Shown here piece by piece: positions 2,634 to 18,734 of a stretch of 64,000 bases of DNA. Position 1 is the stretch's first letter; every line of letters starts with the position of its first letter. The stretch spans positions 182,150 through 246,149 of IMG/VR virus record IMGVR_UViG_3300042261_002390; one strand, given 5' to 3'. Made by a program: the position numbers and the translations under genes. The notes under the pieces were generated by a model that saw nothing but the letters and a program-made list of their open reading frames with translations, was not told where the DNA came from and did no database searches.

Positions 2634-2634
2634 C

Positions 2635-2883: not shown

Positions 2884-2884
2884 G

Positions 2885-3511
2885 TTAATAAGGTGCTTTA
2901 TGAATTAATGAATCAGGTATAGCTGCATATAGACTAGGTGGGAGATAAATGATGTCAATTGTTGAAATGCTTGGCATACTTAAGTCAAATGTCCATCTAT
3001 TGTCTATCACATAGTCTAATTCCTTTTTACAATAATACGCAACGCTGTCGTTTAAACTGTTCTCAATATAAACATCATTTAAATATGATGTATATCTAGA
3101 ATCATCACTAACAAATCCTAGTTTTAGTTTATTATAATTACTTTTATCAATATAGATTATAAATTTAACTGGAATTTGATGTTTATCTTTTTTATTTAAC
3201 TTGAATTTATCTAATTTCCCATCAGTAAAATCAAAGTTTTTAATAATGTCGATATTTGGAAGTGAATCCGAGCCGTAGACATAATATTTAAGTGAATCTT
3301 GAATATAAAATGTCGAAAACTCAGATTTATCGTAAACAACTGTTTTAGTTAATTGTTTATTGCGTAAGCTGTAGTTAACGGTAAGGGTGGCAATTAATGC
3401 CACACCTGTCCCGGTAACCAATATCATGTAACGATATTCCCAAAATCTTTTTTTTACGAAACACATCCATATGAAAGAAACAAGAAGTATTGAAATTATA
3501 AAAGTATACAT
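2885..3511 (-). CDS. membrane-anchored hypothetical protein
   Basis: 208 aa, two N-terminal TM segments. Confidence 0.7.
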   Translation of the reverse strand: MYTFIISILLVSFIWMCFVKKRFWEYRYMILVTGTGVALIATLTVNYSLRNKQLTKTVVYDKSEFSTFYIQDSLKYYVYGSDSLPNIDIIKNFDFTDGKLDKFKLNKKDKHQIPVKFIIYIDKSNYNKLKLGFVSDDSRYTSYLNDVYIENSLNDSVAYYCKKELDYVIDNRWTFDLSMPSISTIDIIYLPPSLYAAIPDSLIHKAPY

Positions 3512-3540
3512 AGTTTTAAAGTCTTAAAAGTTAATAATAA

Positions 3541-4935
3541 TTATTTTTCGTCGTCAGTATCTGCCCATTCAAGACCCGGACAGTAATCGGTGTAACTAGC
3601 ACTAAAATATTCACCAAAAATACCTGTACTACCATAAATTCCACGACCGATTGCACACAATCCACGCCAAACAGCCAATGCCAATGGTACTATAATTTTC
3701 ATAGCAAACCAAATTGCAGGTTTAATCAAGATGTATAGGAAGCTGTATGCAATACCCAATGCAACATATTTTATTGGGTAATATAACCAAATTAATGGCT
3801 CAACATACCAAACCTTTTTACCTGTTTTATACTTATTTACAATTTTTTGCCCGAAACCAATAATAAAGAAACCGATTAGATATGCAATACCAACAATTGA
3901 TAATCCCGCTAAAACATAAACATACAATAACCAATTAGTTGCTGACCAGTCAATAACAATTGTTAATAGGTGTGCAATTAAATTCACTATAAAGAATGAG
4001 GCTGTGAGAAAAAATAACGTAATCAATCCACCAACGAACTGTTTAGTTCTTCTGATGATGTTCTTCCAATCTAAATCAAATGTGAATGCATCAACAAAAA
4101 AATCAATTAGTTTATTCAATGCATTATTAATTGGTTTCATTCTAGCATCCCATTTTTCTTTCTTGATTGCTTCTTTACGTTCAATTTCTCGTTGTTTAAG
4201 AAGACGTTTTTGGTAATCTTCTCGTTTTTTCGCATTAATTTGCGTACTCCATGCGTTCCACTTTAATTCAAGTTCTTTTCTTTTTCCCAAGTATTCTTTT
4301 TGATTAGTACCATATTCTAAGCCATACTTTTCAAGCAGAAAATAATTTAGAATATCGGTGTCTTTGTTTTTTAAATAAAACTTGGCTGTTGTAGGCAATT
4401 TTAAATTACCCCTGTAATAGTACTCGTAGACTTCTTCTTCTTCAATACTTAACAACCAGCTATTAATGAATTTTTCCAGTGACCAGATTAAAATTCTTGG
4501 GAAAAGCATGATTAGCGAATATATAACTTCCCCAATCACTTTAAATGGAACAACTAAAACTGAAAAAATCAGCAACCAAAAGTACGGACAGCCATTTTGC
4601 ATAGTTTTAGGTGTCGGAGCATTTGAGCCAAGCACGTATTTCACCAAACGATAGTGCCATGATTTCATGCTTACACGCATCAATTTAGGCTTTTCTGCCT
4701 GAACAATGTACGCATCATCGCCAGTTTGAAGGTAAATTTTACTGTTTAATGATAACGAACCAACAATAGTTTCAACTACTTTAATATAGTAGCCTTCATA
4801 GTCTTTGTAAAGGAAGCCTTTACAATACAAGATGTTAGGTTTGTTGAATTCAACAACCTTATTCATCAATAACTCTAATTTTTCAAGTTTGTCGGTAATG
4901 TTTCCGACAACAGCTTTTTTAGTTATTTTTCCCAT
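3541..4935 (-). CDS. multi-pass membrane protein with central coiled coil
   Basis: 464 aa; several TM stretches and a charged K/E/R-rich helix. Confidence 0.75.
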   Translation of the reverse strand: MGKITKKAVVGNITDKLEKLELLMNKVVEFNKPNILYCKGFLYKDYEGYYIKVVETIVGSLSLNSKIYLQTGDDAYIVQAEKPKLMRVSMKSWHYRLVKYVLGSNAPTPKTMQNGCPYFWLLIFSVLVVPFKVIGEVIYSLIMLFPRILIWSLEKFINSWLLSIEEEEVYEYYYRGNLKLPTTAKFYLKNKDTDILNYFLLEKYGLEYGTNQKEYLGKRKELELKWNAWSTQINAKKREDYQKRLLKQREIERKEAIKKEKWDARMKPINNALNKLIDFFVDAFTFDLDWKNIIRRTKQFVGGLITLFFLTASFFIVNLIAHLLTIVIDWSATNWLLYVYVLAGLSIVGIAYLIGFFIIGFGQKIVNKYKTGKKVWYVEPLIWLYYPIKYVALGIAYSFLYILIKPAIWFAMKIIVPLALAVWRGLCAIGRGIYGSTGIFGEYFSASYTDYCPGLEWADTDDEK

Positions 4936-5440
4936 TTTGAAATTGATTTAATTTATTAATAATTTTATCTTTAATTCCTGTTTGTTTAATACCTTCAAGA
5001 GCACGTGGTGTTCTGACAAAATTCTCATCCGGGAGAAAATTCGATAGATTTAAATCATCGACAGCCACATAATGTTGAACATTGTTCGTTTTAACATATT
5101 CAAGTATTTCACTTGCACGACAATTTTCTAATTCACTCAAACTTTTGAACAATGTACCCCAATGATTGGGTGTGATGTCTGATATTGTACAATTAATGTT
5201 ATTAACTGCAAATATCTGATTCAACATGTTCAAATCATATTCATTTTTCCAATCACTACTTAAAACAACAATAGGATTGGTTGCTTCAATAATTTCGTTA
5301 AAAACTTTAACACATTTCGCATCAAACAAGTATGAATTGTACAATGGACACCACTTCTTAGGGTTCACGTTAAATTGAATCAATGTGGCTAAAACACCAT
5401 CGATGTCGAGCATGAGGTATGGTTTATTCATCGAGTTCAT
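4919..5440 (-). CDS. HAD-family phosphatase (RNA-repair HAD_SAK-like)
   Basis: LDIDGVL, VLSSDW and AVDD motifs. Confidence 0.8.
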   Translation of the reverse strand: MNSMNKPYLMLDIDGVLATLIQFNVNPKKWCPLYNSYLFDAKCVKVFNEIIEATNPIVVLSSDWKNEYDLNMLNQIFAVNNINCTISDITPNHWGTLFKSLSELENCRASEILEYVKTNNVQHYVAVDDLNLSNFLPDENFVRTPRALEGIKQTGIKDKIINKLNQFQNGKNN

Positions 5441-6215
5441 TTAATAATTTTCTTACATTGTCCAGATGTTTATTATCCATCGGCTTACCGCAAGTGTTCA
5501 ATTTAATGAAGGTTTCGTAAATGTCTTTTTTCGACGGATTTCTTAATGTTCCATATACGATTCCGTGTTCTTCAAATTTATGTCTATCTCTGAAAGATAA
5601 TTCAGAAAACTTATAACCTTTGTATTTGAATCGGTCTTCATAGAACTCACAAATTGCGGTAAGTCGTTGTTTACCGTCGATAATTTCAAATGCTTCGGCA
5701 CGTTTATCGGAATATGGTCGCTCAACGAAAACAAATTTACCAATATCAACATTGTTGAAAATGCTATCGATTAACGCAATCTTATCGCTGAGTTCCCAAA
5801 CATGTTCACGCTGATACTCAACGTCAAAATCAACACCATTAAAATGTACCATGTGAATAAGTGAACGTATGCCTGAATTAGATTGATTGATGCGACAAGT
5901 TTCTTCTTTCCTAAATGTTGTTGGTTTTGCCGTATCATATGGAAACAACTCATACCATTCAACAATTTGTATTGGCTGTGACTGCGATTTAACATTAAAG
6001 TTTTCAACCTTATAGAACAATCCATTTTCATAGATTTCACGAATATAGGTTTCATCATGTGCCCCATAGAATACACGGTCACCTATATTGAAAAATCTTG
6101 TTGGATTTTGTGATAATATTCCGTCTGCGATTTTTTTGCGCAAATCACGAATATCATTCTCCAACAAGATTTTCTGATGTTCTTCAGGTGAAATTGTATT
6201 TTTTTTCTTAGCCAT
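5424..6215 (-). CDS. DUF262 (ParB-like/GmrS-type) domain protein
   Basis: YQREHVW, IIDGKQRLTAI, FIKLNTCGKP motifs. Confidence 0.8.
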   Translation of the reverse strand: MAKKKNTISPEEHQKILLENDIRDLRKKIADGILSQNPTRFFNIGDRVFYGAHDETYIREIYENGLFYKVENFNVKSQSQPIQIVEWYELFPYDTAKPTTFRKEETCRINQSNSGIRSLIHMVHFNGVDFDVEYQREHVWELSDKIALIDSIFNNVDIGKFVFVERPYSDKRAEAFEIIDGKQRLTAICEFYEDRFKYKGYKFSELSFRDRHKFEEHGIVYGTLRNPSKKDIYETFIKLNTCGKPMDNKHLDNVRKLLNELDE

Positions 6216-6236
6216 AACAAAAGTTTTTGCTTATTG

Positions 6237-6263
6237 TACGTTAAGCCTGAAGAAAATGTTACA
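6237..6263 (-). promoter_or_regulatory. ECF-type phage promoter TGTAAC-N17-CGTA
   Basis: Reverse-strand copy of the recurrent motif, 22 nt upstream of the 6215 start. Confidence 0.7.
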
Positions 6264-6267
6264 AATA

Positions 6268-6624
6268 TTATTCGTTATTTGCAACAAAAATTTCAGCAAT
6301 TGCTTTTTTTATTTGTTCTTTAGGTAATACACCCACTGCTAATTGTGGTTCAGCACCGATTGGGATGAACAACATTGAGGGAACATTTCTGATTCCGAAT
6401 GTCATAGCTAATTCACTTTCAGCATCGGTATCGATTTTATATACATCGATTTCCGGATGTTCTGCAGCGACTTCTTCCAAAATAGGTGCAAGCACTTTAC
6501 ATGGTTGACACCATTCTGCTTCGAACTTTAATATTGTTGGCTTAGTACCTTTGAATGACCACTCATCGCCATTGGTGTAGTCAAATACTTTTTCTTTAAA
6601 ACTTTCAACAGTTAAATTTTCCAT
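6268..6624 (-). CDS. trxA: thioredoxin
   Basis: WCQPCK active site; IRNVP cis-Pro motif. Confidence 0.9.
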   Translation of the reverse strand: MENLTVESFKEKVFDYTNGDEWSFKGTKPTILKFEAEWCQPCKVLAPILEEVAAEHPEIDVYKIDTDAESELAMTFGIRNVPSMLFIPIGAEPQLAVGVLPKEQIKKAIAEIFVANNE

Positions 6625-6650
6625 TTTCTAATTTTTATTTAAGATTATTA

Positions 6651-7226
6651 TTATTTTAATTCTGGATGTAATTTATTCCAGATTTTTGTACAATAGTTTA
6701 TTTGAAACCTACAATCATCTAAAGGATGGTGTTCAGTACCTATGTTAGGTTCATTAGCTTTAATCTCCGGCGAGAAGAATTCGAATGTTCTGACATCAAG
6801 TTCTTTTCTAAAATCCCAAGGTATTGCTTCATAATTCCATAAAACATATGCATCCTTAAGTATTCCGCAGTCAAATCTAGGACTTCTGCCGTAAACATAT
6901 ATATCCTTACCGCCTATTTCGCCCATGTATGACTTGAATTTTTCCAGAACATTTTTTATGTTATCAGAAGGTTTGCACATTTCTTTACGTGCTTCTTCAT
7001 TTTGTTGAAGCCACCAATAGATTGTACTACCGTTAATTTTCATACCAGAGTTTAAACATGATTGAATATCAATTCTTTCATAGAAAGTTCTACCATATTC
7101 GCCAGTATTTAAATCAAATTCGACAGCACCTATTGATGTAATGACAGAATAGCTATCATTACCCATAGTTTCAAGGTCGAGCATTACGTGACCTAAATTT
7201 TTTTGAGGAAATCTTTTACTTACCAT
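6651..7226 (-). CDS. 3'-5' exoribonuclease (DEDD, Rv2179c-like)
   Basis: MLDLETMG, FDCGIL, HHPLDDC. Confidence 0.85.
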   Translation of the reverse strand: MVSKRFPQKNLGHVMLDLETMGNDSYSVITSIGAVEFDLNTGEYGRTFYERIDIQSCLNSGMKINGSTIYWWLQQNEEARKEMCKPSDNIKNVLEKFKSYMGEIGGKDIYVYGRSPRFDCGILKDAYVLWNYEAIPWDFRKELDVRTFEFFSPEIKANEPNIGTEHHPLDDCRFQINYCTKIWNKLHPELK

Positions 7227-7795
7227 TTATAATCAGGATTATGAATGTTATCAAGTTCTTCCCACATCGACGCTAATATATTCTGATTGAGTTCAGCAGC
7301 ATATGATTCTAAGGCAATCTGAAATATTGGCTTGCGATATCGATATTCTTTCACATATTTTTTGTACATTGAATCACCGTTAAGCTTCGAGTACAATGCA
7401 TTAGCGTGAATATCGCACATCTTTAGAATAATTGCACGATGGTCTTTAATGGTTTTAGGCATTGTTAATAAATGTCTAAGCAATCTGGTTTCGGCTGGAA
7501 CATCAGTTACTGCTAATATTACATCAGCAATATCTTTATTAGATTTTTCTTTGATGTTGTTGTAGGTTTGCTTAGCATCTTCAATCAAATCATGTCCATT
7601 GGCTGCTGCTTTGGTAGCAAGGAAATCTTCTTGGTATTTAAAAACATTTCTGAACTTATGAACAGTACTAACTACCATCAATACGTGTGTATCGTAATAA
7701 TTTTTACCGTCATATTCACAATTAGCATTGTTATGACTCTCACGAGCGTAACTAGCAAAACTCTCAATATTAATCTTAGTCATAGATTTATGCAT
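7220..7795 (-). CDS. HD-domain phosphohydrolase, SpoT/Mesh1-like
   Basis: HDLIED, AVTD and LKMCDIHAN motifs typical of (p)ppGpp-hydrolase-like HD proteins. Confidence 0.75.
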   Translation of the reverse strand: MHKSMTKINIESFASYARESHNNANCEYDGKNYYDTHVLMVVSTVHKFRNVFKYQEDFLATKAAANGHDLIEDAKQTYNNIKEKSNKDIADVILAVTDVPAETRLLRHLLTMPKTIKDHRAIILKMCDIHANALYSKLNGDSMYKKYVKEYRYRKPIFQIALESYAAELNQNILASMWEELDNIHNPDYKW

Positions 7796-7806
7796 TAAAA
7801 TTTCGA

Positions 7807-7883
7807 CAAATATAACACTATAAAATTAATATCCAAAAATATTTAAAAATTATTTGCATTGTAATGAATTTTATTTAATTTTG
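7807..7883. promoter_or_regulatory. divergent Bacteroidota sigma70-type -7 boxes (TAnnTTTG) at the strand switch
   Basis: TATATTTG on the minus strand at 7807-7814 and TAATTTTG on the plus strand at 7876-7883, between divergent genes. Confidence 0.55.
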
Positions 7884-7903
7884 CTGCATATAAAATTCAA
7901 AAT

Positions 7904-8374
7904 ATGAAAACAGGCAAACGAATTCCAATTACTGCAGCTAAACAAATTGCAGATACATATGGATATACACAAGTAATCATTCATGCATATGACGGAGAAC
8001 AATCCGGGGTACAATGTGTTGCAACATACGGCAAAACAGTCGATGATTGTAATAATGCAGCCAATGGTGGTAATCACATCAAGAAATTATTAGGCTGGTC
8101 GCCTCATCTATGCAATACACTTCCACGTAGAAGAAAAAAAGAAGAAGTTGACAATAGCTTAGATAAACCAGAAACATTAATGAAACAAGGGTTTGAAAGT
8201 CTAAGTGCAACTCGTAGCTACTTTAAAAATGCCGTTGTTGAGTATCAAAAAAGAAACTCAAGTGCTAAAGCTGACCCAGAAAATGCTAAGAATGTCCAAG
8301 AAGCAATCAATTTATTAAACAAAGCCTATGATGAAATTTCCGCTATTTGGGAAAATGATATCATGGATTCTTAA
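7904..8374 (+). CDS. hypothetical protein
   Basis: 156-aa ORF, first plus-strand gene. Confidence 0.7.
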   Translation: MKTGKRIPITAAKQIADTYGYTQVIIHAYDGEQSGVQCVATYGKTVDDCNNAANGGNHIKKLLGWSPHLCNTLPRRRKKEEVDNSLDKPETLMKQGFESLSATRSYFKNAVVEYQKRNSSAKADPENAKNVQEAINLLNKAYDEISAIWENDIMDS

Positions 8375-8383
8375 TTAAAAAGC

Positions 8384-8644
8384 ATGCCGAAATATTATAT
8401 TACACAAGAACAATTCGAAGAGATTCAACATTATAAAAGAATGTTCGAATATGATGCTGAAGAAATTAAGGATTTATGTGGTTCTGAAAAGGATGACATT
8501 GTTTATGGATTTAGGCTCGGTGAGCTACATACACATTTACGGCAATGTTTTATGGATATGATGGAACTTGAAAGTAGTATCCGGGAGCAAGAAATACATC
8601 AAACTGAAAAAATAGTACATCAGGATGAAAAACAAACTAATTAA
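8384..8644 (+). CDS. hypothetical protein
   Basis: 86-aa ORF. Confidence 0.65.
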   Translation: MPKYYITQEQFEEIQHYKRMFEYDAEEIKDLCGSEKDDIVYGFRLGELHTHLRQCFMDMMELESSIREQEIHQTEKIVHQDEKQTN

Positions 8645-8981
8645 ATCCATATTTAAGTTCTTTAACATTAATCCCGGGAAACTGGAATATGTCGTTACCG
8701 TTGTAAATGTTAGCGGGGAAGTTAAGAAATATACATTTAAAAATATTAAAGACGTTAATGGATTTGTTACCGACGTTAACAGTGAAACGTATTGGAATAT
8801 TCAAAGTATAGAGAAAATTAAACGATATGAGTTTACTTATAATCGTGAAGTAATTCACTCACCATTATTTTTCACAATGGAAAATGTGACTGAGAAACAA
8901 TATGTTGACGACCACGACTATAGCTTTTTAATTAAAAACAGTAGTTTGAAAAATATAAGACGAGTGACGTTGAAAGATTAA
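8625..8981 (+). CDS. hypothetical protein
   Basis: 118-aa ORF. Confidence 0.65.
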   Translation: MKNKLIKSIFKFFNINPGKLEYVVTVVNVSGEVKKYTFKNIKDVNGFVTDVNSETYWNIQSIEKIKRYEFTYNREVIHSPLFFTMENVTEKQYVDDHDYSFLIKNSSLKNIRRVTLKD

Positions 8982-8988
8982 TATTTTT

Positions 8989-9014
8989 TGTAACATTTCT
9001 AAATTGTAAACGTA
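8989..9014 (+). promoter_or_regulatory. ECF-type promoter TGTAAC-N16-CGTA
   Basis: Recurrent intergenic motif. Confidence 0.7.
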
Positions 9015-9037
9015 TTATTCGCCGAAAAATTAACCGA

Positions 9038-9229
9038 ATGAAAAATAAAATTAATATACTTGAACCACCAAAACCGCCTCTAGGTAGGGCGTTACGAGAA
9101 GGTGTTGGGCATTTTTGTAATAATTGTGGCTCGACTGTATCTAAAAACGGCTTTCTTGGATTATTTGGTGAAATGTTATGCTATAATCAAGAATGCCCGA
9201 ACAGTAAATCAAAAAAATATGGATTATAA
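9038..9229 (+). CDS. small Cys-rich (zinc-ribbon-like) protein
   Basis: CNNCG and CYNQEC motifs. Confidence 0.6.
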   Translation: MKNKINILEPPKPPLGRALREGVGHFCNNCGSTVSKNGFLGLFGEMLCYNQECPNSKSKKYGL

Positions 9230-9443
9230 AAAGCTAAGTACTGATGAACTTTGTGACATTATTGTAACTAAGATTGGCGTACCGTTACCAACATATAGTT
9301 ATGACTATAGGAAATATGTTTCTGTAGTACCTCAAAATATTAGTTTTGGTGATGGTGTTAAGGGAATTGAAAATGCTGATTTACACAATACATTTAGAGA
9401 GGCATGTATGCGTATAATATTTTGGGATTTGGATAAAACGTAA
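9219..9443 (+). CDS. hypothetical protein
   Basis: Internal ATG (MDYKKLST) of the 9102-9443 ORF, coupled to the upstream stop. Confidence 0.6.
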   Translation: MDYKKLSTDELCDIIVTKIGVPLPTYSYDYRKYVSVVPQNISFGDGVKGIENADLHNTFREACMRIIFWDLDKT

Positions 9444-9484
9444 ATAGTTAAAATTCTTTACTATTTATATATAAAAAAATTTCT

Positions 9485-10000
9485 ATGAGTAATGAAATAC
9501 GAGAAATGATTGATAGAGTTAAAAATTTTAAACAATTCATAAACGAACAATCAGAACAAAAAAACAATGTGATATATCATTTTGTTGATGAAAAGAAATT
9601 GGTTAATATCTTAATTAAAAATGAATTAAAGCCAAGGTGGAAACATTATATAGAAAGTGAAGATAGAATTGTTGTTGGGACATCTTTTACTTGGGATTTA
9701 AAACATAGCACAATTTCTAATATGGAATATCCAATAAAACTGATATTTAATAGAAATAAATTAGAAACTGATTATAATTCATTTTTAATTAATAGCAATA
9801 GAGTACATCTACAAACAATGGCACAATTGAAGCCTAATTTATATGACCCAACAGCATATAAATATGAAGATGAAACACCAAATGAGTTGTTTGTAGAAGG
9901 AATAATTAAACCATTGAGTACATATATGATAGATATTGAAATATTAAAACCAATTTCAAAAGAAACTGAACAACTCATTCTTAATTTTAAGCGTGGGTAA
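9485..10000 (+). CDS. hypothetical protein with N-terminal MSNEIREMIDRVKNFKQFINE leader; possible ADP-ribosyltransferase-like fold
   Basis: Spacing of YHF...TSFT...NELF resembles the H-S-E ART triad; TATTTATA box at 9462. Confidence 0.6.
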   Translation: MSNEIREMIDRVKNFKQFINEQSEQKNNVIYHFVDEKKLVNILIKNELKPRWKHYIESEDRIVVGTSFTWDLKHSTISNMEYPIKLIFNRNKLETDYNSFLINSNRVHLQTMAQLKPNLYDPTAYKYEDETPNELFVEGIIKPLSTYMIDIEILKPISKETEQLILNFKRG

Positions 10001-10015
10001 ACTTTTTAAAGTTTT

Positions 10016-10041
10016 TGTAACAAAACGTTAATTAGAACGTA
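10016..10041 (+). promoter_or_regulatory. ECF-type promoter TGTAAC-N16-CGTA
   Basis: Recurrent intergenic motif. Confidence 0.7.
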
Positions 10042-10091
10042 TAATACAATATTCTTATTCACTTAATATTTAAAGACATGAAGAAATTATT

Positions 10092-10259
10092 ATGTATAAA
10101 GAAAATGTAAAATATAAGCTAATCGGATACCAACCAGCAGGAATTGACTATAATGTGCCAAGAACAGAAATTGCTGAATGGAAAAATGGTTATTGGTATC
10201 CATATGGATGTGGGAAAAGAATAGTCAATTTCGTAATTGAAGAAGTAGTAGAACTTTAA
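10092..10259 (+). CDS. small hypothetical protein (55 aa)
   Basis: Manual translation MYKENVKYKLIGYQPAG...VVEL*; the stop lies just before the first attC-like site. Confidence 0.55.
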   Translation: MYKENVKYKLIGYQPAGIDYNVPRTEIAEWKNGYWYPYGCGKRIVNFVIEEVVEL

Positions 10260-10264
10260 ATGTT

Positions 10265-10399
10265 TTATAACATGATGTAGCTAACCGAAGTTGGCGATTA
10301 CGAAGCACAAACTTTCAAACTAAAAAAATGTTTAATCGAAGCACAACAGTTCATATCAGCACTATACCGCCAATTTTGGTTAGCTGCATCACGTTATGT
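10265..10399 (+). mobile_element. attC-like palindromic site 1
   Basis: TTATAAC...GTTATGT ends; arms 10267-10286 and 10378-10397 are complementary at 18/20 positions. Confidence 0.7.
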
Positions 10400-10420
10400 G
10401 CCGTTTTTAAATAAATTATT

Positions 10421-11047
10421 ATGGCTGGAATTGATAAAACTTACACAGACTCTTATAAAGATTATAAAGAGTTTAAAACTTGGGCTGATAACCAAAAATT
10501 AACGTTTTTTGACGGATTAACTGTATGTATTGGTGATTGGGTTTGGCAATATGAAAAGGACGATTTTACAAATGGTGAAATTCCTATTATGAATACTCCA
10601 ACTTGGTTGGATATTTACTTAATTCAAAATTGTAAAACTTGGTTTGTTTTAGATAGAATGAAGTCTGTTTATGGTGAAGAATCATATAAAGAATTTCAAA
10701 ATATTGATTTAACAGCAAAACCACCATCCGACTTTAAGCAGAATAGAAAAATTACAATAAAGCCGAATAAAAATTGCAAGTTTCCATTTAAGAAAAGAAT
10801 GTTTAGCAAGCCAATTGGAGGTAAAACTAAATGGTGGCTGCAATGTGAAAATGATTTTTGGTATAATAATGAAACTAAAAGATGGGTGAGTTATGAAACA
10901 CAATATCCACATAACACTAATACTGCTCATATTACTTCTACTAAAGCATTAGTAAGACATCTACGAAATCAATATTTACCTAAAGGGGTTGTATTTACAA
11001 TTTCGGGTAGATATGTTGGAGAAGAATACATTGCGGTAGTGTCTTAA
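10421..11047 (+). CDS. hypothetical cassette-borne protein
   Basis: 208 aa; bounded by GTTATGTGCC (10393) and its exact reverse complement GGCACATAAC (11050). Confidence 0.75.
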   Translation: MAGIDKTYTDSYKDYKEFKTWADNQKLTFFDGLTVCIGDWVWQYEKDDFTNGEIPIMNTPTWLDIYLIQNCKTWFVLDRMKSVYGEESYKEFQNIDLTAKPPSDFKQNRKITIKPNKNCKFPFKKRMFSKPIGGKTKWWLQCENDFWYNNETKRWVSYETQYPHNTNTAHITSTKALVRHLRNQYLPKGVVFTISGRYVGEEYIAVVS

Positions 11048-11052
11048 ATGGC

Positions 11053-11185
11053 ACATAACGTGTTGCAGCTATGCGCTGAATGGGGATTGTACCCACGAAA
11101 CTTAAAACGAATAACAAAACTATGAATACTAACAATTTATCCAACGAGAGCGAAAACCCCATTTTGCGTATAGGTGCGGTTAGCT
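11053..11185 (+). mobile_element. attC-like palindromic site 2
   Basis: ACATAAC...GTTAGCT ends; internal imperfect inverted repeat CTATGCGCTGAATGGGG / CCCCATTTTGCGTATAG. Confidence 0.7.
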
Positions 11186-11694
11186 GCTGCCGTTTTATTT
11201 TTCTCGATATTGACGGGGTGATAGCTACACCAAAAACGGTAGAGCATGGAATGTGGGCTTTAACACCTGAAAAACAAGATTTACTTGGAATGATAATAGA
11301 AAAAACAGGTGCAAAGATTGTGCTTAGTAGTAGCTGGCGAAAACATACAATTGAAGATACTATTGAACACATGAAAGAACATGGGTTTAGATTCTGTGAT
11401 GAAATTGTAGGCATAACAATTAGAGCTTATCAATATTTACAAAAAGGCGTTCATTTATCAATTCCGAGAGGTGTAGAGATTAAGCAATGGATTGATACGA
11501 ATATTCATTCAAATAATGGTAAAGATTGGAACAGAAAGGAATTAGGCAAAGATTGGAATTATGTGATTTTGGATGATGATTCCGATATGCTTTTAGAACA
11601 CAAAGATAATTTTATATGTTGCGATTCAATGGAAGGTTTAACTCTCGAACAAGCAAACAAAGCTATCGAGGTGCTTTCTTACGGTTGCAGCTAA
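11122..11694 (+). CDS. HAD-family phosphatase (HAD_SAK-like); start lies inside the attC-like site
   Basis: FLDIDGV, LSSSWR and ILDDD motifs; the N-terminus MNTNNLSNESENPILRIGAVSCC is encoded by the palindrome. Confidence 0.8.
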   Translation: MNTNNLSNESENPILRIGAVSCCRFIFLDIDGVIATPKTVEHGMWALTPEKQDLLGMIIEKTGAKIVLSSSWRKHTIEDTIEHMKEHGFRFCDEIVGITIRAYQYLQKGVHLSIPRGVEIKQWIDTNIHSNNGKDWNRKELGKDWNYVILDDDSDMLLEHKDNFICCDSMEGLTLEQANKAIEVLSYGCS

Positions 11695-11976
11695 CGGTTG
11701 GCGGTATGGCATAGTTATTTTTTCTATCACAAAACTAAATTAAAAGATATGGCTTATGATATTTATGGACAAAACTTAGCGAGCGGACACTGTGAGGTGC
11801 ATCCGTGGGTGGGAGAAAGTTACCCTTGCTCTTTGTGTTACGCAGAAAGCAAGCCTAAGCACGACCCAAGACAAAAAGAGTATGAACGTGCGGAGGCAGA
11901 ATACTACGCTGAAATGGAGCGAGCGCACTACGAAGAACTGGCAAGAAAAAATAATTTGCTATACCGCATGTTATGC
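11689..11976 (+). mobile_element. attC-like site 3 with an unusually long, gene-containing loop
   Basis: AGCTAAC...GTTATGC ends; arms GCGGTATGGCATAGTTATTTTTT (11701) and AAAAAATAATTTGCTATACCGC (11946-11967). Confidence 0.6.
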
Positions 11977-12066
11977 TATGTGGCACTTGCAGTAAGCAAA
12001 TTAAATGAGCGAGTTCAGAAATACAAGGAAAAAATGTTAAGCAGAGTGGTGCAAAAGCGCCATTGA
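11749..12066 (+). CDS. hypothetical protein spanning attC-like site 3
   Basis: MAYDIYGQ start with CEVH/CSLC Cys-His motifs; reads through the right arm. Confidence 0.6.
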   Translation: MAYDIYGQNLASGHCEVHPWVGESYPCSLCYAESKPKHDPRQKEYERAEAEYYAEMERAHYEELARKNNLLYRMLCYVALAVSKLNERVQKYKEKMLSRVVQKRH

Positions 12067-12095
12067 GCATAACTCCCAAATATACGCAATATTAC
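12066..12095 (+). mobile_element. orphan attC-like left half-site
   Basis: AGCATAAC is the exact reverse complement of GTTATGCT at 11970; followed by an L-box-like ATATACGCAAT with no partner found nearby. Confidence 0.45.
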
Positions 12096-12110
12096 CAAAG
12101 ATTAATTATC

Positions 12111-12335
12111 ATGAAATCAATTACATATACCATTGAAATTAAATGGATAATTATTGGATATGATAATTATGGATTTGGTAGTGATAAGATTCTTTATAAT
12201 TTGAAAACTAATAGAAGATTAAAACAATCATATAATTCAGGAAGTATTGGTTATTGGTTTGGGAAACGATTTATTCCATTATCGAAACTAAGAAATTTAT
12301 TAAAAAAACCAACAATAGAATTTTGTCCTTTTTAA
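12111..12335 (+). CDS. hypothetical protein
   Basis: Internal ATG MKSITYTIE of the 12063 ORF. Confidence 0.6.
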   Translation: MKSITYTIEIKWIIIGYDNYGFGSDKILYNLKTNRRLKQSYNSGSIGYWFGKRFIPLSKLRNLLKKPTIEFCPF

Positions 12336-12336
12336 T

Positions 12337-12362
12337 TGTAACCTTTTTGATTGTGATTCGTA
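12337..12362 (+). promoter_or_regulatory. ECF-type promoter TGTAAC-N16-CGTA
   Basis: Recurrent intergenic motif. Confidence 0.7.
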
Positions 12363-12386
12363 TAAGTAGGAAACCATTAAAAATAA

Positions 12387-12728
12387 ATGATGAAAAAGAT
12401 TTTATTATCGATACTAATTGTGGTGGCATTTACTTCATGTGAAGAAATGAAAAAGACCAAAGAATTTTATGCCGACGAGCAAAAAAAATTAAGTCCTGCA
12501 AGTACTGAATATACTAAAATCAGGCTCGTAGAATTAAAAGACTTCGAAGGTTATAATCAAAATGTTGGTGGCTTTGATTTTGTGAGAGATAGTTGTGAAT
12601 ATACCTATCTTTGGACAGGTGCTGGAAATGGTGGCGGTACAATTTTCCATAAAGGCAATTGTAAGTATTGTCAAGAACGCAATAAAAAAATGATTGAAAA
12701 CCTTTTAAAGAAATATTACCATGAATAA
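12387..12728 (+). CDS. putative lipoprotein
   Basis: Signal peptide ending AFTSC (lipobox-like). Confidence 0.7.
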   Translation: MMKKILLSILIVVAFTSCEEMKKTKEFYADEQKKLSPASTEYTKIRLVELKDFEGYNQNVGGFDFVRDSCEYTYLWTGAGNGGGTIFHKGNCKYCQERNKKMIENLLKKYYHE

Positions 12729-12987
12729 TTTATCATATCCGAAAGATTTCGGAAAAACCGTTGAGAGTGTTGAAATAATCAGTAATGAAGTTAACGATGA
12801 TAGAGTTATCATTAGCATTGAAAATGATGGCAATTTTGGTCACTTCTTAGCGTCAGAAGGTAAACCATTTGTATTTGCCAATGAAGAAGCTGCTGAAGAA
12901 TTTGCTAAAGAACACGCACTTGAAAACTACAATATTGAACCATTTGTTGATTATGATTTTTCCGGCATAGAACTAATCGAACTATAA
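12721..12987 (+). CDS. hypothetical acidic protein
   Basis: 88-aa ORF, overlaps the upstream stop. Confidence 0.65.
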   Translation: MNNLSYPKDFGKTVESVEIISNEVNDDRVIISIENDGNFGHFLASEGKPFVFANEEAAEEFAKEHALENYNIEPFVDYDFSGIELIEL

Positions 12988-13001
12988 TCTCATGAAAGAA
13001 T

Positions 13002-13310
13002 ATGAAGTTAAGTGCAAATGCAAAATTTTGGTCGAGTATTGGTGCAATAATGGTTATACTCATCATATTGCTATTTCTACTGAAAAAAGGAATTGATAGC
13101 CAATTAGACAAGGAAGCTAAGGAAAGTTATCAAGCAATCGAAGCAGCATCTGCTGAATCATATGAACGTGGATTGTGGGATGGTTTTAATCTCACCGTTA
13201 AGTATCTAAACGATAAAAAGTATCTGAAAGACAACGATACTATAAAAATCGAGATTACTGAATTAATTGATGTATTACACTCAAAAAATAATCAAAATGC
13301 CAAGAATTAA
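13002..13310 (+). CDS. membrane-anchored hypothetical protein
   Basis: N-terminal TM helix. Confidence 0.65.
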   Translation: MKLSANAKFWSSIGAIMVILIILLFLLKKGIDSQLDKEAKESYQAIEAASAESYERGLWDGFNLTVKYLNDKKYLKDNDTIKIEITELIDVLHSKNNQNAKN

Positions 13311-13485
13311 AAGTGTTGTTAAGAATGAAGAGGTTTATGTACGTCTAAGTGATATAATGTTATCACTACGAGAAGATTTAGATAATGTTAAGTCTGATGA
13401 GGTGAAAGAATATATCCGGGATGACATTAAAGTGTGGAAAAAATATGAAAAAGATATTTTAGAACAAGCAGGTATAAAATTTTAA
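13297..13485 (+). CDS. hypothetical protein
   Basis: Internal ATG MPRIKSVV. Confidence 0.6.
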   Translation: MPRIKSVVKNEEVYVRLSDIMLSLREDLDNVKSDEVKEYIRDDIKVWKKYEKDILEQAGIKF

Positions 13486-13494
13486 TTAAAAACT

Positions 13495-14382
13495 ATGACA
13501 GATATTGAATTAATCGAAAAAATATTGGCATCTAAAAAGCCATCAGATATCTTTCCGGATGATTGGAAAAAAGACTATCTTCGCTACAGTAAAATGATTT
13601 ATCCTGATTTTTGTAAGCATCCTAAAGCGAGTGATGCTATGGCAAAAATTAATCATTATAAAGATTTGATTGAGAACGGTACAATATATACTGATGAAGC
13701 CGGAGAATTTCGAGTCTTTGAGAAGAAAATTGAATATCAAATAACTGATACTAATCGTACTATTCTAAGATGGTCATACGAAAATTATCGTAAACTCAAA
13801 TCTAAAACTGATGAAGCATCGTTGAAATTTCATCGATATTTGCCGGAAGATATGATTATGAATAACGATAAGTTAACTATTGTATTAAAAGACCGGGCAG
13901 TTCCATTATCAAATAATCAGCTTGAACAAATTCATGTAAATTGGATATTTAGCCGAATGTTTGAGTTTAGTATGTGGATGCAACAGATTGGTATGGTTCA
14001 TATGGGTTTAAACCCTACGACTGTATTTGTTGTTCCTGAAACACATGGAATTATTGTCGTTTCTTTTTATCATATGTGCCCGATTGGGAAGAAAGCTGAA
14101 ACTATTTCAGCTAAGTACAAAACATGGTATCCAACAACGTTGTTTAGTAAAAAGATTGCAACATCTGATATTGATTTAGAATTGTGTAAGAAAATTGCCA
14201 TATATTTATTGGGCGATAGGTCAGCAGCAGGTACTAAATTAAAAATGGATAAAAAAAATATAAATCAGGATGTTTTGACATTCTTGTTAACTAAACATGA
14301 AAATAGTATTGAGATATATAAAAAATATCGTGATTTGTTGGCAAAACACTTTGAAAGAAAATTTTATCCATTTTCTTTGTAG
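13495..14382 (+). CDS. J-domain-like N-terminus plus protein-kinase-like domain
   Basis: YSKMIYPD (HPD-like) helix; MVHMGLNPTTVFVVPETHG resembles a degenerate kinase catalytic loop. Confidence 0.6.
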   Translation: MTDIELIEKILASKKPSDIFPDDWKKDYLRYSKMIYPDFCKHPKASDAMAKINHYKDLIENGTIYTDEAGEFRVFEKKIEYQITDTNRTILRWSYENYRKLKSKTDEASLKFHRYLPEDMIMNNDKLTIVLKDRAVPLSNNQLEQIHVNWIFSRMFEFSMWMQQIGMVHMGLNPTTVFVVPETHGIIVVSFYHMCPIGKKAETISAKYKTWYPTTLFSKKIATSDIDLELCKKIAIYLLGDRSAAGTKLKMDKKNINQDVLTFLLTKHENSIEIYKKYRDLLAKHFERKFYPFSL

Positions 14383-14386
14383 AAAA

Positions 14387-14412
14387 TGTAACCTTTTTAA
14401 GTTCTAAACGTA
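14387..14412 (+). promoter_or_regulatory. ECF-type promoter TGTAAC-N16-CGTA
   Basis: Recurrent intergenic motif. Confidence 0.7.
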
Positions 14413-14468
14413 TAAGAGGTATTGGATTTAAAAATCATATTAGTATTAACAATTAAAAATTAAAAAAC

Positions 14469-14594
14469 ATGGGATTTCCAAATCATTCAAACGATGTAAA
14501 CACTGCAAAGTCATTCGAAGAAATGGCTGCAATGGAAGAAGCTGCTGAAGCAGAAGTAAATAACGCTCCGGAAACCGAGGCTAAACCTGAGTAA
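14469..14594 (+). CDS. small acidic protein (41 aa)
   Basis: Manual translation MGFPNHSNDVNTAKSFEEMAAMEEAAEAEVNNAPETEAKPE*; 2 nt before the vWA gene. Confidence 0.55.
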   Translation: MGFPNHSNDVNTAKSFEEMAAMEEAAEAEVNNAPETEAKPE

Positions 14595-14596
14595 TC

Positions 14597-15514
14597 ATGG
14601 GGTATAGTAATTGGTCGGATGATGCATATACTAATATTAGCAATAGTAAAAGTTATGCATCAAAATCTGCTGACGATATTTTCAGTAGCACACCTAAAAG
14701 CGATATGCTTCCGAACAAAATTGTTGTTCGTGAATCTCGTGATAGTGTTGCACACCCAAATTCGTTAGCAGTTATGTTCTTTCTTGATGATACCGGAAGT
14801 ATGGGAAGAATCCCGGAAGATATCATCAAAAATGAACTTCCTACTTTGATGAACACCATCATCGACAATGGTATCCAAGACCCTCAGATTCTTTTTGGTA
14901 CGATTAACGACCATAAGTGTATCGATACACCGATTCAGGTTGGTCAGTTTGAATCTGGAACTGAAGAACTTGATAAATGGTTGTCCGGAATGGCAATTCA
15001 AAGTGGTGGCGGCGGTCAAGATAGAGAAAGTTATCTTTTGGCTTGGTATGTTGCAGGTCGTCACACTTCAATTGATTGCTTCGAAAAACGAAATCAAAAA
15101 GGATTTTTGATTACTGTTGGCGATGAAGCTAGTTGGGATACTCTTAGCGGTGATACTTTGAAAAAAGTATTTGGTGCTAATAGCGATGAAAGTGTTACCG
15201 ATAAACAGCTTCTTGAAGAAGCACAAAGACTTTATCACGTATATCACATTCACGTCAATGAAGCAAGCTATAAAGACGACCCTGATGTATTAGGGTATTG
15301 GGAAAAAATGCTTGGTGAAAGACTTATTGTGTTGAATGATTATCATGCAATTTGTGCAACAGTTGCAACATTGATTGCAGTACAACATGGCGTTGACATG
15401 GCGAAAGTCGTGAGCAGATTCGATGCAAGAACAGCAGGTATGGTTACAACTGCACTTGCAAAAGTCACAACCACATTGGTTGTAACACCGGACGAAGGCA
15501 TCATGAAGCTTTAA
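14597..15514 (+). CDS. von Willebrand factor A (vWA) domain protein
   Basis: MIDAS motif DDTGSMG; GGGGQDRESY; TVGDE. Confidence 0.85.
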   Translation: MGYSNWSDDAYTNISNSKSYASKSADDIFSSTPKSDMLPNKIVVRESRDSVAHPNSLAVMFFLDDTGSMGRIPEDIIKNELPTLMNTIIDNGIQDPQILFGTINDHKCIDTPIQVGQFESGTEELDKWLSGMAIQSGGGGQDRESYLLAWYVAGRHTSIDCFEKRNQKGFLITVGDEASWDTLSGDTLKKVFGANSDESVTDKQLLEEAQRLYHVYHIHVNEASYKDDPDVLGYWEKMLGERLIVLNDYHAICATVATLIAVQHGVDMAKVVSRFDARTAGMVTTALAKVTTTLVVTPDEGIMKL

Positions 15515-15533
15515 ACGCTACTACGAGACTATT

Positions 15534-15568
15534 AAAAGGGGATATATGTAAATATATCCCTTTTTTTT
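15534..15568 (+). terminator. intrinsic terminator
   Basis: GGGATATAT-GTAA-ATATATCCC hairpin followed by a T8 run. Confidence 0.8.
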
Positions 15569-15594
15569 GTAACATTTTATTAGAATATAACGTA
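15568..15594 (+). promoter_or_regulatory. ECF-type promoter TGTAAC-N17-CGTA
   Basis: Recurrent intergenic motif. Confidence 0.7.
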
Positions 15595-15666
15595 TAATAA
15601 TGAAAAATCAATATCTTTTGTGTTAGGTTTTAATTTTCGTGGTATTTATATTAAAATACAAATATT

Positions 15667-16407
15667 ATGGAAATTTATAAAATTACGAACACGATAACAA
15701 ACGATTTTTATATTGGTTCTGCTGTGAACTTTAAAAATAGAAGGTGGGGTCACATTAGTTCTTTGAGAAAAAATAAGCATAAGAATCGATTTATTCAAAA
15801 TTCTTGGAATAAATATGGTGAAAATGCATTTATTTTTGAAATTATTGAAATTGTTGATGCTAAAGAAAATTTGATTGATAGAGAGCAATATTGGATTGAT
15901 ATCTTATCACCAACATTTAATTTGGCTAAGAAGGCAGGTAGTCCTTTAGGTGTTAAACATTCTGAAAAATCAAGAAAGAATATGTCATTAGCACATAAAG
16001 GATTGTCTAAAGAACAACGAGGACATAAAGAAAATTGTAATTGTTGTATTTGTAATCGTAAAAATGGTAATAATAGTCCACGATATATACAACGTGAAGA
16101 AAGAACATGCATTTGTGGATGTGGTACTAAATTTACTTGTAGAATTAATAGTAATAGAAAATTTATTTCAGGTCACAATAAATCACAATTAGGTAAGAAA
16201 AAAAGTTATGAAGCTATCGAAAAACAAAGAAACAAAATATTAACCCCAATATTACAATTTGATATTAATGGCAATTTAATTAAGGAATGGAAGGGCGTTA
16301 TTATTGCAGCAAATGAATTAAATATTGATAATACTGCAATTTCTGCCTGTTTAAGGGGAAAATCAAAAACATCTGGTGGATATATTTGGAAATATAAATT
16401 TAAATAA
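15667..16407 (+). CDS. free-standing GIY-YIG homing endonuclease with NUMOD3/NUMOD1-like DNA-binding modules
   Basis: EIYKITN...FYIGSA, R..H..L, FEIIE; KHSEKSRKNMS; C-terminal ILQFD...AISACLRGK...GGYIWKYK. Confidence 0.9.
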   Translation: MEIYKITNTITNDFYIGSAVNFKNRRWGHISSLRKNKHKNRFIQNSWNKYGENAFIFEIIEIVDAKENLIDREQYWIDILSPTFNLAKKAGSPLGVKHSEKSRKNMSLAHKGLSKEQRGHKENCNCCICNRKNGNNSPRYIQREERTCICGCGTKFTCRINSNRKFISGHNKSQLGKKKSYEAIEKQRNKILTPILQFDINGNLIKEWKGVIIAANELNIDNTAISACLRGKSKTSGGYIWKYKFK

Positions 16408-16414
16408 TTTAATT

Positions 16415-17566
16415 ATGAAGATAAGTATAATTCTTGGCGCATGTTTCGGAGACGAGGGTAAAGGTGCTTTCGTCAATTATCTGTGTAATAAAACAGACAA
16501 ACCATTGGTTGTTAGGTTTAACGGTGGTCAGCAATGTGGACATACTGTAGTATATAATGGAAACAGACACGTATTTTCAAATTTCGGTTCTGGAAGCCTT
16601 CGAGGTGTTCCGACATATTGGTCAGAGTATTGTACCTTAGACCCGATTGGTTTTAAAAATGAATTAGCATCGTTGAACCAAATTGGTATTATGCCAAAAA
16701 TAGTTTATAATGCTAATGCAATGGTGACTACACCTTTTGATAAATATCAGAACCATAAGCTCAATGCAATAAACAAACACGGTAGTGTTGGAGTTGGTTT
16801 TGGAACAACTATTCAACGAAACGAAGACCATTATCACTTATATGTGAGGGACTTACTGTATCCTAAAATCAGGGATGCTAAACTCGAAAATATTTGGAAG
16901 CAGTATTATAAGATATCTGAAATGTCAGGGGATTGGGAAGTTATAATGAATAAGTTTATCGAAGCATGTGATGTTTTTATTAACTATGCGCATTGCGGTA
17001 TAGTAAATTCAATTGATGAGATTTTATACTACGACCATTTAATTTTCGAAGGTGGTCAGGGCATATTACTTGACCAAAATTATGGATTCTTCCCAAATGT
17101 CACACGTAGCAATACAACATCAAAAAATGCAATTGAAATCATCAATAAATTGCCATTGTTTGAAGGCGATAAAGTAATTGATACATATTATATCACCAGA
17201 GCATATCAAACAAGGCATGGCAATGGTTATATGACGAATCAAGATTTAGATATCTCATATATTAAAGAAAATCCTAATGAAACCAATGTGATGGGTTTTC
17301 AGGGTGAATTCAGGAAATCTGTTCTTGATTTAGATTTGTTGAAATATGCTGTTCAATGTGACAAATATCACAATCCTAAGTCAAGGAAGAATCTCGTAAT
17401 TACGTGCCTAGACCAAATTCCAAGTAAGAATGCCGTACCACTTACTTTTGAAGGTAAATTAACACACATGAAACCTAAACAAATAAGTGAATTCTTGCTT
17501 GGAAACAGTATGGAAAGATGTTATCCAACATATTCAGATACCGGATATTCGGATGTACTTCCATAA
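16415..17566 (+). CDS. purA: adenylosuccinate synthetase-like protein (divergent PurA family)
   Basis: GACFGDEGKG, RFNGGQQCGHT, FEGGQGILLD, TRAYQTRHGNG; start moved to MKISIILG. Confidence 0.85.
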   Translation: MKISIILGACFGDEGKGAFVNYLCNKTDKPLVVRFNGGQQCGHTVVYNGNRHVFSNFGSGSLRGVPTYWSEYCTLDPIGFKNELASLNQIGIMPKIVYNANAMVTTPFDKYQNHKLNAINKHGSVGVGFGTTIQRNEDHYHLYVRDLLYPKIRDAKLENIWKQYYKISEMSGDWEVIMNKFIEACDVFINYAHCGIVNSIDEILYYDHLIFEGGQGILLDQNYGFFPNVTRSNTTSKNAIEIINKLPLFEGDKVIDTYYITRAYQTRHGNGYMTNQDLDISYIKENPNETNVMGFQGEFRKSVLDLDLLKYAVQCDKYHNPKSRKNLVITCLDQIPSKNAVPLTFEGKLTHMKPKQISEFLLGNSMERCYPTYSDTGYSDVLP

Positions 17567-17596
17567 TATTTTACTATATTTGCAAAAAAGATTGAT

Positions 17597-18358
17597 ATGA
17601 AATTCTTAATACAAAAAATAAACGGTCAGATTAAACATGATTTTGCATTCACGTTATTACAGTCAATTGATTTTAAAAATTGGTTGAATCGTGGTAATTC
17701 AAAAGATAAGATTATTGTGAAATATGCTAATACTGAAGAAGGTAAGCCAATTGGAATGAATTTTAAATTGATTCATGCCGATTATGTACCTGTCGGAAGT
17801 GTTGAATTTGTATCATCGTTTTGTGATATTTATCATCATGTTATTCCAAAACCAATTAACGTGCCAGAAGATTTATTCGTTGGCACATTTCAACATACTC
17901 GCCGGGAAATCTTTAACGGTACTGAGAAAGACTTGAAAAGATTGGACTCAGGTAAATGGTTTGTGAAAAGTAACGACAAGATTAAGGGGTTTAGTGACAT
18001 TTTTAAAATTGATAATAACCATGTTTGGGATATACCAAAGGGTAATTATCAGTTTTCGAGATTTATCAGCATTGATAGTGAATGGCGTGCTTTTGTTTAT
18101 AAAGGAAAATTGGTCGGTTTACAAAACTACGCAGGTGAATTCACCAAATTTCCAAAGGTCGATAGAATTGAATCAATGATTCTCGCATATAAATCAGCAC
18201 CAGTTGCATATACACTTGATGTTGGTGTGAATGATTACGATACATTTGTTATTGAATGTCATGACATGTTCTCCTGCGGATTATATGGTTTTGCTGACCA
18301 CTCAATATATCCGAATATGCTTAATGGTTGGTTTAGAGAATATTTAAGAAAGCAATAA
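17597..18358 (+). CDS. ATP-grasp domain protein (R2K/DUF4343-like)
   Basis: WFVKS, SEWRAFVY, YTLDVG, VIECHD...GLYG. Confidence 0.75.
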   Translation: MKFLIQKINGQIKHDFAFTLLQSIDFKNWLNRGNSKDKIIVKYANTEEGKPIGMNFKLIHADYVPVGSVEFVSSFCDIYHHVIPKPINVPEDLFVGTFQHTRREIFNGTEKDLKRLDSGKWFVKSNDKIKGFSDIFKIDNNHVWDIPKGNYQFSRFISIDSEWRAFVYKGKLVGLQNYAGEFTKFPKVDRIESMILAYKSAPVAYTLDVGVNDYDTFVIECHDMFSCGLYGFADHSIYPNMLNGWFREYLRKQ

Positions 18359-18359
18359 G

Positions 18360-18734
18360 ATGAGTTGGAAATGTATTAACGATATCTACAACGAAAAAGA
18401 TGTAATATTATTTTTTGAGAATGTGTCCTATGAAGAACAGGATGATAGGGGCGAGTCTGATGATATTGCGATTTGCCTTTGTGATGAGCTTGGCATTAAA
18501 CAGTATTTGGTTGACCAATTTGTTAGGAATAATTTTATCGAAGAACTGGATGAAGAACCAGATGTGGTTGAATTACTGAAGAAAAACATTCATGATGTAA
18601 TGATTGCAAACGGACGAAGTGAAAAATACTTTAGTATTTATTGGGCAATCTGGTGGTCAAAGGTGAGCATCGAATGTAAAATTGGTTTGTTTAAAACATT
18701 TGAACAAATAAAAAATAAAAACGATGACAATTAA
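18360..18734 (+). CDS. hypothetical acidic protein
   Basis: 124-aa ORF. Confidence 0.65.
   Translation: MSWKCINDIYNEKDVILFFENVSYEEQDDRGESDDIAICLCDELGIKQYLVDQFVRNNFIEELDEEPDVVELLKKNIHDVMIANGRSEKYFSIYWAIWWSKVSIECKIGLFKTFEQIKNKNDDN

Follow-up and report, generated by a model that had tools for sequence, protein, structure and literature searches.

Probable integron-type gene cassettes with predicted in-site gene starts in a large phage genome

Main finding

A stretch of 64,000 nucleotides from the IMG/VR virus record IMGVR_UViG_3300042261_002390 (positions 182,150 to 246,149, the last 64 kb of a 246,149-bp record; hereafter the window) harbours a short array of three palindromes that resemble the attC recombination sites of integrons. 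These palindromes belong to a large, conserved and apparently undescribed family of structured sites that is native to Bacteroidota. In bacterial chromosomes the family is arranged as in classical integrons, whereas in phages the layout is reversed: the site sits in front of the gene and, in 52% of the phage sites against 3% of the bacterial ones, an ATG in the loop of the palindrome opens the downstream reading frame. For the gene that prompted this investigation the site is predicted to supply the start codon and approximately the first 20 codons.

The original prediction, made from the sequence alone, was that a HAD gene starts at 11122 inside one palindrome and stops within the next, and that a further gene lies largely in the loop of a third; this observation is confirmed. 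The interpretation attached to it is only partly supported: the attC-like nature of the palindromes and the provision of translation starts by the sites stand up to scrutiny, but the proposals that cassette shuffling would create fusion proteins and that a separate 100-nt mini-cassette is present are not supported, and the suggestion that loops constitute a second cargo position is weak, as it rests on one long-loop site.

The cassette array in the window

The window has a G+C content of about 32% and its genes, read with genetic code table 11, lie almost all on one strand. They are phage-type replication and nucleotide-metabolism genes, including those for a PurZ-like enzyme, a DNA ligase, a Dda-like helicase and an RNA ligase. 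Between 10260 and 12075 lie the three imperfect palindromes, all on the + strand. When every AAC...GTT pair of the 246-kb genome was scored by the fold of its arms, site 1 ranked first and site 2 third among 3,797 candidates, and nothing else of this kind occurs in the record. An ungapped inverted-repeat scan seeded with 9-mers missed site 1, because G.T pairs interrupt the seeds.

The left end of the array is GTAGCTAAC at 10277–10285, in which half of the R box is contributed by the upstream DNA; the family consensus at this point is gc..cTAAC. Site 1 extends from AAC 10283 to GTT 10381 (99 nt), with 30-nt arms that are 87% complementary, and is detected by the covariance model described below at 85.1 bits (E = 6e-19). 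The DNA fold of its + strand has a z-score of −3.2. The site has an extra outer stem, 10267–10279 with 10385–10397, which forms a second ATAAC...GTTAT box 13 nt outside the TAAC...GTTA box. Site 1 is followed by the gene of cassette A, 10421–11047 (208 aa, no family match), which uses its own start codon: relatives of this gene in four other phages have no sites around them and keep the same ATG. The ATG in the loop of site 1 opens only a 28-codon upstream reading frame, 10329–10415, that stops 5 nt before the ATG of the gene. A 26-nt inverted repeat (10381–10406 with 11046–11071, 92% complementary) brackets gene 10421 and runs across the cassette boundary.

Site 2 runs from AAC 11057–11059 to GTT 11179–11181 (125 nt) and scores 96.2 bits (E = 7e-22). 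ATG 11122 lies in its loop and opens the gene of cassette B, 11122–11694, which encodes a HAD_SAK_2 phosphatase. The frame reads MNTNNLSNESENPILRIGAVSCC and then RFIFLDIDG, and the Pfam HAD_SAK_2 match starts at residue 26, so that a 25-residue leader precedes the domain; roughly the first 11 codons come from the loop and the next ~10 from the right arm. The stop TAA (11692–11694) lies inside GCTAAC 11690–11695.

Site 3 is an outlier. It runs from AAC 11693–11695 to GTT 11970–11972 (280 nt), with a stem formed by 11701–11711 and 11956–11966 and a loop of about 240 nt. The covariance model did not find it and its fold alone is not significant (z = −1.07); its status rests on the fit of both arms to the family consensus and on the recurrence of the whole 11696–12073 unit in three other contexts. 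The gene of cassette C, 11749–12066 (105 aa, no family match), starts in the loop, which holds its first ~69 codons, crosses the right arm at 11956–11972 and ends about 94 nt beyond it. The stretch past the right arm, envisaged as a 100-nt mini-cassette, is not a separate unit. The array ends with GCATAAC at 12067–12073, and no hairpin follows it in the window.

A conserved family of structured sites

Alignment of 11 sites showed 24 predicted pairs, 15 of which exhibit compensatory changes. A covariance model, R1, and a degenerate pattern were then used to search viral sequences: at least 119 viral contigs match, and R1 finds 249 sites in 85 sources, strictly co-oriented within each locus and spaced 300–1,500 nt apart. 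An earlier exact pattern, ACGTGWTGCAGCTAAC, had given 36 viral hits, about the number estimated to arise by chance alone, and only one of these was the near-twin of the window. Over 150 sites, 95.6% of cells are paired against 67% in shuffled alignments, and the covariation score is 0.65 against 0.13; none of 500 shuffles reached this value and slid controls gave at most 0.10. The alignment was fitted to the model, which favours such pair counts.

AAC is present in 150 of 150 sites and GTT in 149 of 150, whereas the G after AAC and the TGTTA are nearly invariant. Three G.T (G.U) pairs are kept in 118–143 of 149 sites on the + strand, which folds better than the − strand. The site consists of a conserved base TAACG...TGTTA, a small asymmetric 3x1 internal loop, a covarying stem of about 20 bp with three fixed G.T mismatches that favour folding of the + strand, and an A-rich loop. 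The family mode in length is 120–130 nt, and sites 1 and 2 fall within the range of about 55–140 nt characteristic of attC sites, while site 3 does not. The R boxes read GCTAAC/GTTAGC and the consensus is nnnTAAC/GTTAGCn, in which the triplets and the adjacent T/A fit the canonical RYYYAAC/GTTRRRY, but the third R of GTTRRRY is usually C, a departure at one position. An asymmetric internal loop follows the AAC/GTT box, and neither obvious single extrahelical bases nor a conserved single bulged G or T was seen. No Rfam family matches, either at the gathering threshold across the window or at E ≤ 0.1 across eight loci, and blastn of the region and of the best site against 50,697 isolate phage records returned no match.

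A pattern scan of species-representative genomes returned at least 120 loci, nearly all from Bacteroidota: Flavobacteriaceae, Bacteroidales, Marinilabiliales, Draconibacterium and their relatives, with a few from Ignavibacteria, Chlorobiota and Calditrichia. The viral and bacterial consensus sequences are the same, including the G.T positions. Arrays were also encountered in metagenome-assembled genomes (MAGs) outside this group, namely a Nitrosotalea MAG (locus L303, eight sites), a Shapirobacteria MAG (L241) and a Gammaproteobacteria MAG (L316), which may be binning errors, phage contigs or real transfers. Within the family there is a size class of about 190–200 nt, mainly in bacterial arrays, with about 65 extra bases in the loop (L253:7234–7434, L272:927–1115, L240:898–1097 and L256:1248–1448).

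Bacterial arrays and the linked recombinase

Whole-genome searches revealed very long co-oriented arrays of up to about 170 kb in Bacteroidota chromosomes. These include 1,277,404–1,399,374 in a Croceivirga chromosome (G006:C1), 1,952,745–2,119,382 and 561,378–630,264 in a Draconibacterium chromosome (G007:C1), and arrays at 2450–19943 and 482252–539933 in two further genomes (G008:C3 and G009:C14, respectively). Five arrays in four genomes end beside the genome's best match to the integron-integrase model, a Xer/IntI-like tyrosine recombinase gene that lies on the opposite strand with its 3' end facing the array. In G006, for instance, the sites occupy 1277404–1399374 (+) and the recombinase 1401383–1402174 (−). 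This is the 'inverted integrase' layout, and it makes the + strand of the model the attC bottom strand.

The recombinase itself is Xer-like. The integron-integrase model TIGR02249 scores 187–216 bits against a cut-off of 265, in two stretches, with model positions 180–238, corresponding to the IntI-specific insertion, unmatched. The best family is XerA/integron integrase NF040815, at 209–216 bits against a cut-off of 220, and the closest solved structures are a XerC-like protein, XerA and IntI4. Thus the protein does not satisfy the criteria for IntI and the system is best termed integron-like rather than a proven integron. IntegronFinder 2.0 reported almost no integrons in Bacteroidetes (PMC9024848), and literature searches found no description of these arrays.

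Reversed layout in phages

The orientation of genes relative to the sites differs sharply between the two settings. In bacteria the longest open frame lies on the − strand of the model in 156 of 175 cassettes, as in classical integrons where the gene precedes its non-coding attC on the top strand, whereas in viral contigs, as in the window, it lies on the + (folding) strand in 123 of 151 cassettes. A loop ATG opens an ORF extending at least 40 codons past the site in 78 of 150 viral sites, 59 of these in the frame that reads GTT as a codon, against 8 of 270 bacterial sites. Loops are 49% A in the viral set and 36% A in the bacterial set, and an in-frame loop ATG occurs in 60% and 14% of sites, respectively. 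The commonest position of the viral ATG is 57 nt before the GTT, exactly as in the window.

The N-terminal peptide pattern that the original prediction had proposed to search for on unrelated domains is found on many different downstream ORFs: in the viral set 106 leaders read M...(E/Q)(N/T)P.L.I..VS.S. In addition, the TAA of TAAC is the stop of a long upstream ORF in about 30% of viral sites, against 4% for the other two frames.

Cassette boundaries and mobility

The HAD gene behaves as a discrete mobile unit. Five viral contigs carry it at 78–100% identity over residues 1–190, whereas more than 70 more distant relatives match only from residue 24 onward. The distant relatives begin MKK(I/Y)IFLDIDG, three or four residues before the catalytic motif (MKKIIFLDIDG in HAD homologues outside cassettes), while the cassette version has lost that Met and reads ...VSCCRFIFLDIDG. 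The cassette copy has therefore lost its native start, and its N-terminus comes from the site, although translation from 11122 is inferred only. By tblastx, contigs L044–L047 share nothing with the 246-kb genome except HAD, with or without its upstream palindrome, and the HAD cassette occurs in five unrelated phage contexts. Each copy has an upstream palindrome with a different arm sequence but the same shape, an in-frame loop ATG, and a different palindrome and gene after GCAGCTAAC. The upstream sites are homologous but diverged, sharing an (E/Q)(N/T)P motif and carrying compensatory arm changes; a near-identical copy of site 2 stands before HAD in L047. The site therefore travels with HAD. 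By eye, the cassettes after HAD in other phages look like a DNA methyltransferase with a DPPY motif (L046:4625–5323) and a PP-loop ATPase with an SGGxxS motif (L047:4626–5000), the latter ORF being open from the loop ATG.

Homology boundaries fall at the 5' TAAC|G. The window and L047 share sequence exactly from TAAC|GT of site 2 through HAD to the next TAAC. Cassette C (11696–12073) recurs at 94–97% protein identity in three other contexts, the loci L371–L373: homology starts at TAAC|GG and ends at GCATAAC, where that with L371 and L372 stops, and in L372 a canonical site follows. Across contigs, alignments start at AAC or GTT and end at AAC, never at GTT, the starts at GTT reflecting faster divergence of the sites; this blastn survey comprised 78 alignments with few informative pairs, most ends being far from a detected site. 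Relatives of the flanking gene 9485–10000 gave no syntenic genome in which an empty site could be compared.

Metagenome data indicate polymorphism within one population. Logan contigs of the probable source run break at 11696 and 12069, and one contig joins these two points at depth 9.8, against 19.5 for the cassette path; the join is not the simple equal-position deletion, and the sequence between its two sides is unresolved. A further joint, 10419 to 11046, has only 25 letters on one side at 90% likeness and is given little weight. An independent lake sample has cassette C behind a different sequence from 11692, and wastewater samples have HAD followed by other sequences from 11699–11708, one of them the left arm of another site.

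A cassette is therefore a site plus its downstream ORF up to the next TAAC, and loop, right arm and ORF travel as one unit. Because start and stop lie inside the unit, reordering cassettes should not fuse proteins.

Interpretation and alternative explanations

The reading favoured here, to which a probability of about 0.7 is assigned, is that window positions 10277–12073 represent a short array of three integron-type cassettes inside a large phage genome without an integrase of its own, that is, a cluster of attC sites lacking integrase (CALIN): three sites lie in 1.8 kb and PF00589 is absent from the 246-kb record. In this view each palindrome is a folded-DNA recombination site of attC type with the crossover in the 5' TAAC|G. 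The phage version would be turned round relative to the bacterial one: the gene lies on the folding (bottom) strand, the site upstream of it, the loop supplies an A-rich initiation region and an ATG, the right arm is translated as about 10 codons (...I..VS.S), and the TAA of the next TAAC often serves as the stop, so that the cassette carries its own start and stop wherever it lands. The analysis establishes the structure, the family, the contrast in orientation, the boundaries and the polymorphism within one population. That a tyrosine recombinase, from the host or phage-borne as in some relatives, performs the exchange on folded single strands, and that translation starts at 11122, are inferences, as no recombination was observed directly.

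Against this reading stand the bacterial recombinase scores below the integron-integrase cut-off, the lack of obvious single extrahelical bases, the departure of the R boxes at one position, the 11696-to-12069 joint that is not the simple equal-position deletion, the outlying size of site 3 and the lack of a recombinase in most phage records. No tyrosine recombinase is found in the window's record, in five related records or in 11 of 16 further records with arrays, the 11 including five rated 100% complete by CheckV, one of them with direct terminal repeats; use of the host enzyme during infection is an inference. One 246,115-bp viral record (L366; G011:C1) has two tyrosine recombinase genes, at 76972–78120 and 233753–234813, each directly downstream of a site on the same strand, as if the recombinase were itself a cassette gene, and one of them is 40% identical over 213 aligned residues to the bacterial array-linked enzyme.

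An alternative is that the hairpins act only as RNA, as conserved mRNA leaders presenting the start codon in an open A-rich loop, or as processing or protein-binding sites, cassette exchange being a by-product of homologous recombination between such modules as with the PeSL elements of T4-type phages. The sense orientation of the folding strand in phages, an RNA fold of site 1 with z = −6.45, the conserved G.U pairs, the preferred in-frame distances of ATGs in A-rich loops and the scarcity of recombinases in phage records are all compatible with this idea. Nevertheless, it appears unlikely, as the same consensus and G.T positions occur in bacterial arrays, where genes lie on the other strand and an mRNA would carry C.A mismatches, those arrays end at a tyrosine recombinase, the boundaries fall on the invariant TAAC rather than being spread over the conserved stretch, and no Rfam family matches. 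An added RNA role in phages is not excluded.

Less likely still is a passive relic, in which the phage once picked up a piece of a bacterial integron array whose sites have no role in the phage. Only three sites occur in 246 kb, no integrase is present and CALINs of two or three sites have been reported in phages (PMC9892861), but this scenario sits uneasily with the reversed gene orientation and specialized loops, the recurrence of the HAD cassette in unrelated phages and the polymorphism of cassette C within one sample. Moreover, phage genomes rated 100% complete carry 5–17 sites, and one rated 92% complete carries 19, in one to a few clusters. That the sites are miniature inverted-repeat transposable elements, or ends of a transposon inserted between genes, is very improbable. 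The arms do resemble terminal inverted repeats, a 26-nt inverted repeat flanks gene 10421 and a 446-aa ORF at 48262–49602, far from the cassettes, matches phage 'transposase' families (phrog_506, E = 3e-37); yet the arms differ between copies and covary, so that structure rather than sequence is kept, copies are strictly co-oriented and spaced one per gene, the site is inherited with its downstream ORF and no target duplications were seen. A chance-palindrome reading was likewise rejected on covariation and co-orientation.

Relationship to known systems

With attC sites and CALINs, including those of phages (Qi et al. 2023, PMC9892861), the present sites share imperfect palindromes with AAC...GTT at the base, structure conserved more than sequence, one site per cassette in co-oriented arrays, better folding of one strand, a crossover placed in the conserved triplet and the occurrence of arrays without integrase, which in CALINs extends to virulent phages. 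They differ in that the gene of phage arrays lies on the folding strand with the site upstream, the loop carries the start codon and the right arm is predicted to be translated, and the asymmetry comes from fixed G.T mismatches and a 3x1 internal loop rather than from single extrahelical bases; the phage CALINs described so far have two or three sites in the usual orientation. CALINs in phages are thus already known, whereas the reversed, start-bearing layout and the Bacteroidota family appear to be new.

The bacterial relatives recall sedentary chromosomal integrons with an 'inverted' integrase (Treponema, Chlorobi and similar) and the ~125-nt Vibrio repeats: arrays comprise tens to more than a hundred cassettes, sites are about 126–130 nt, genes lie on the top strand and the recombinase gene points into the array. 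The recombinase, however, is closer to XerA/XerC and lacks a match to the IntI-specific insertion. The PeSL promoter–stem-loop cassettes of T4-type phages (PMC2839356, PMC4122927) similarly bracket small accessory genes with conserved regulatory stem-loops in variable regions and mark points of modular exchange, but they are conserved in sequence (a promoter plus a terminator-like stem) and are thought to act through homologous recombination, with no AAC/GTT box, no covarying long stem, no bacterial arrays, no linked recombinase and no start codon inside the loop. The sites under study have arms that vary and covary, no promoter-like conserved block was recognized in them, and the family also occurs in bacterial chromosomes. 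In class 1 integrons, ORF-11 in attI1 and N-terminal fusions of first cassettes also illustrate a recombination site contributing translation signals or N-terminal residues to a cassette gene; this is not known to extend beyond the single attI site and the first cassette, whereas here the cassette's own attC-type site would do so.

Integron cassettes are normally described as promoterless genes followed by a non-coding attC site, and how they arise and how they are expressed far from the array promoter are open questions. Here one site family appears in the classical layout in bacterial chromosomes and in a reversed layout in phages, where the site would provide the start of translation for its own gene and make the cassette a self-contained unit, in an organism group that lacks Shine-Dalgarno initiation. 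The HAD cassette, a gene whose native start codon was replaced by the site, is a concrete trace of cassette formation. The findings also point to a widespread array system with a Xer-like recombinase in a phylum where surveys reported almost no integrons, and provide a covariance model to find it. A bolder possibility, about as likely as not, is that phages of Bacteroidota keep their own pool of integron-type cassettes built inside out, in which the folding strand of the site is the coding strand, its loop the translation initiation region, its right arm a shared N-terminal leader and TAAC the stop, exchanged by a Xer-like recombinase that lacks the IntI insertion; the same family would then reveal very large arrays in Bacteroidota chromosomes that current integron surveys have missed.

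Other features of the window

Two further genes of the window deserve mention. The ORF at 16376–17566 matches phrog_1211, a PurZ-type adenylosuccinate synthetase homologue (E = 4e-49), which hints at a modified-base (2-aminoadenine) genome. The RNA ligase at 43231–44253 (phrog_24030) shows weak HNH-like matches at its N-terminus and, together with the HAD_SAK_2 cassette, suggests an RNA-repair theme.
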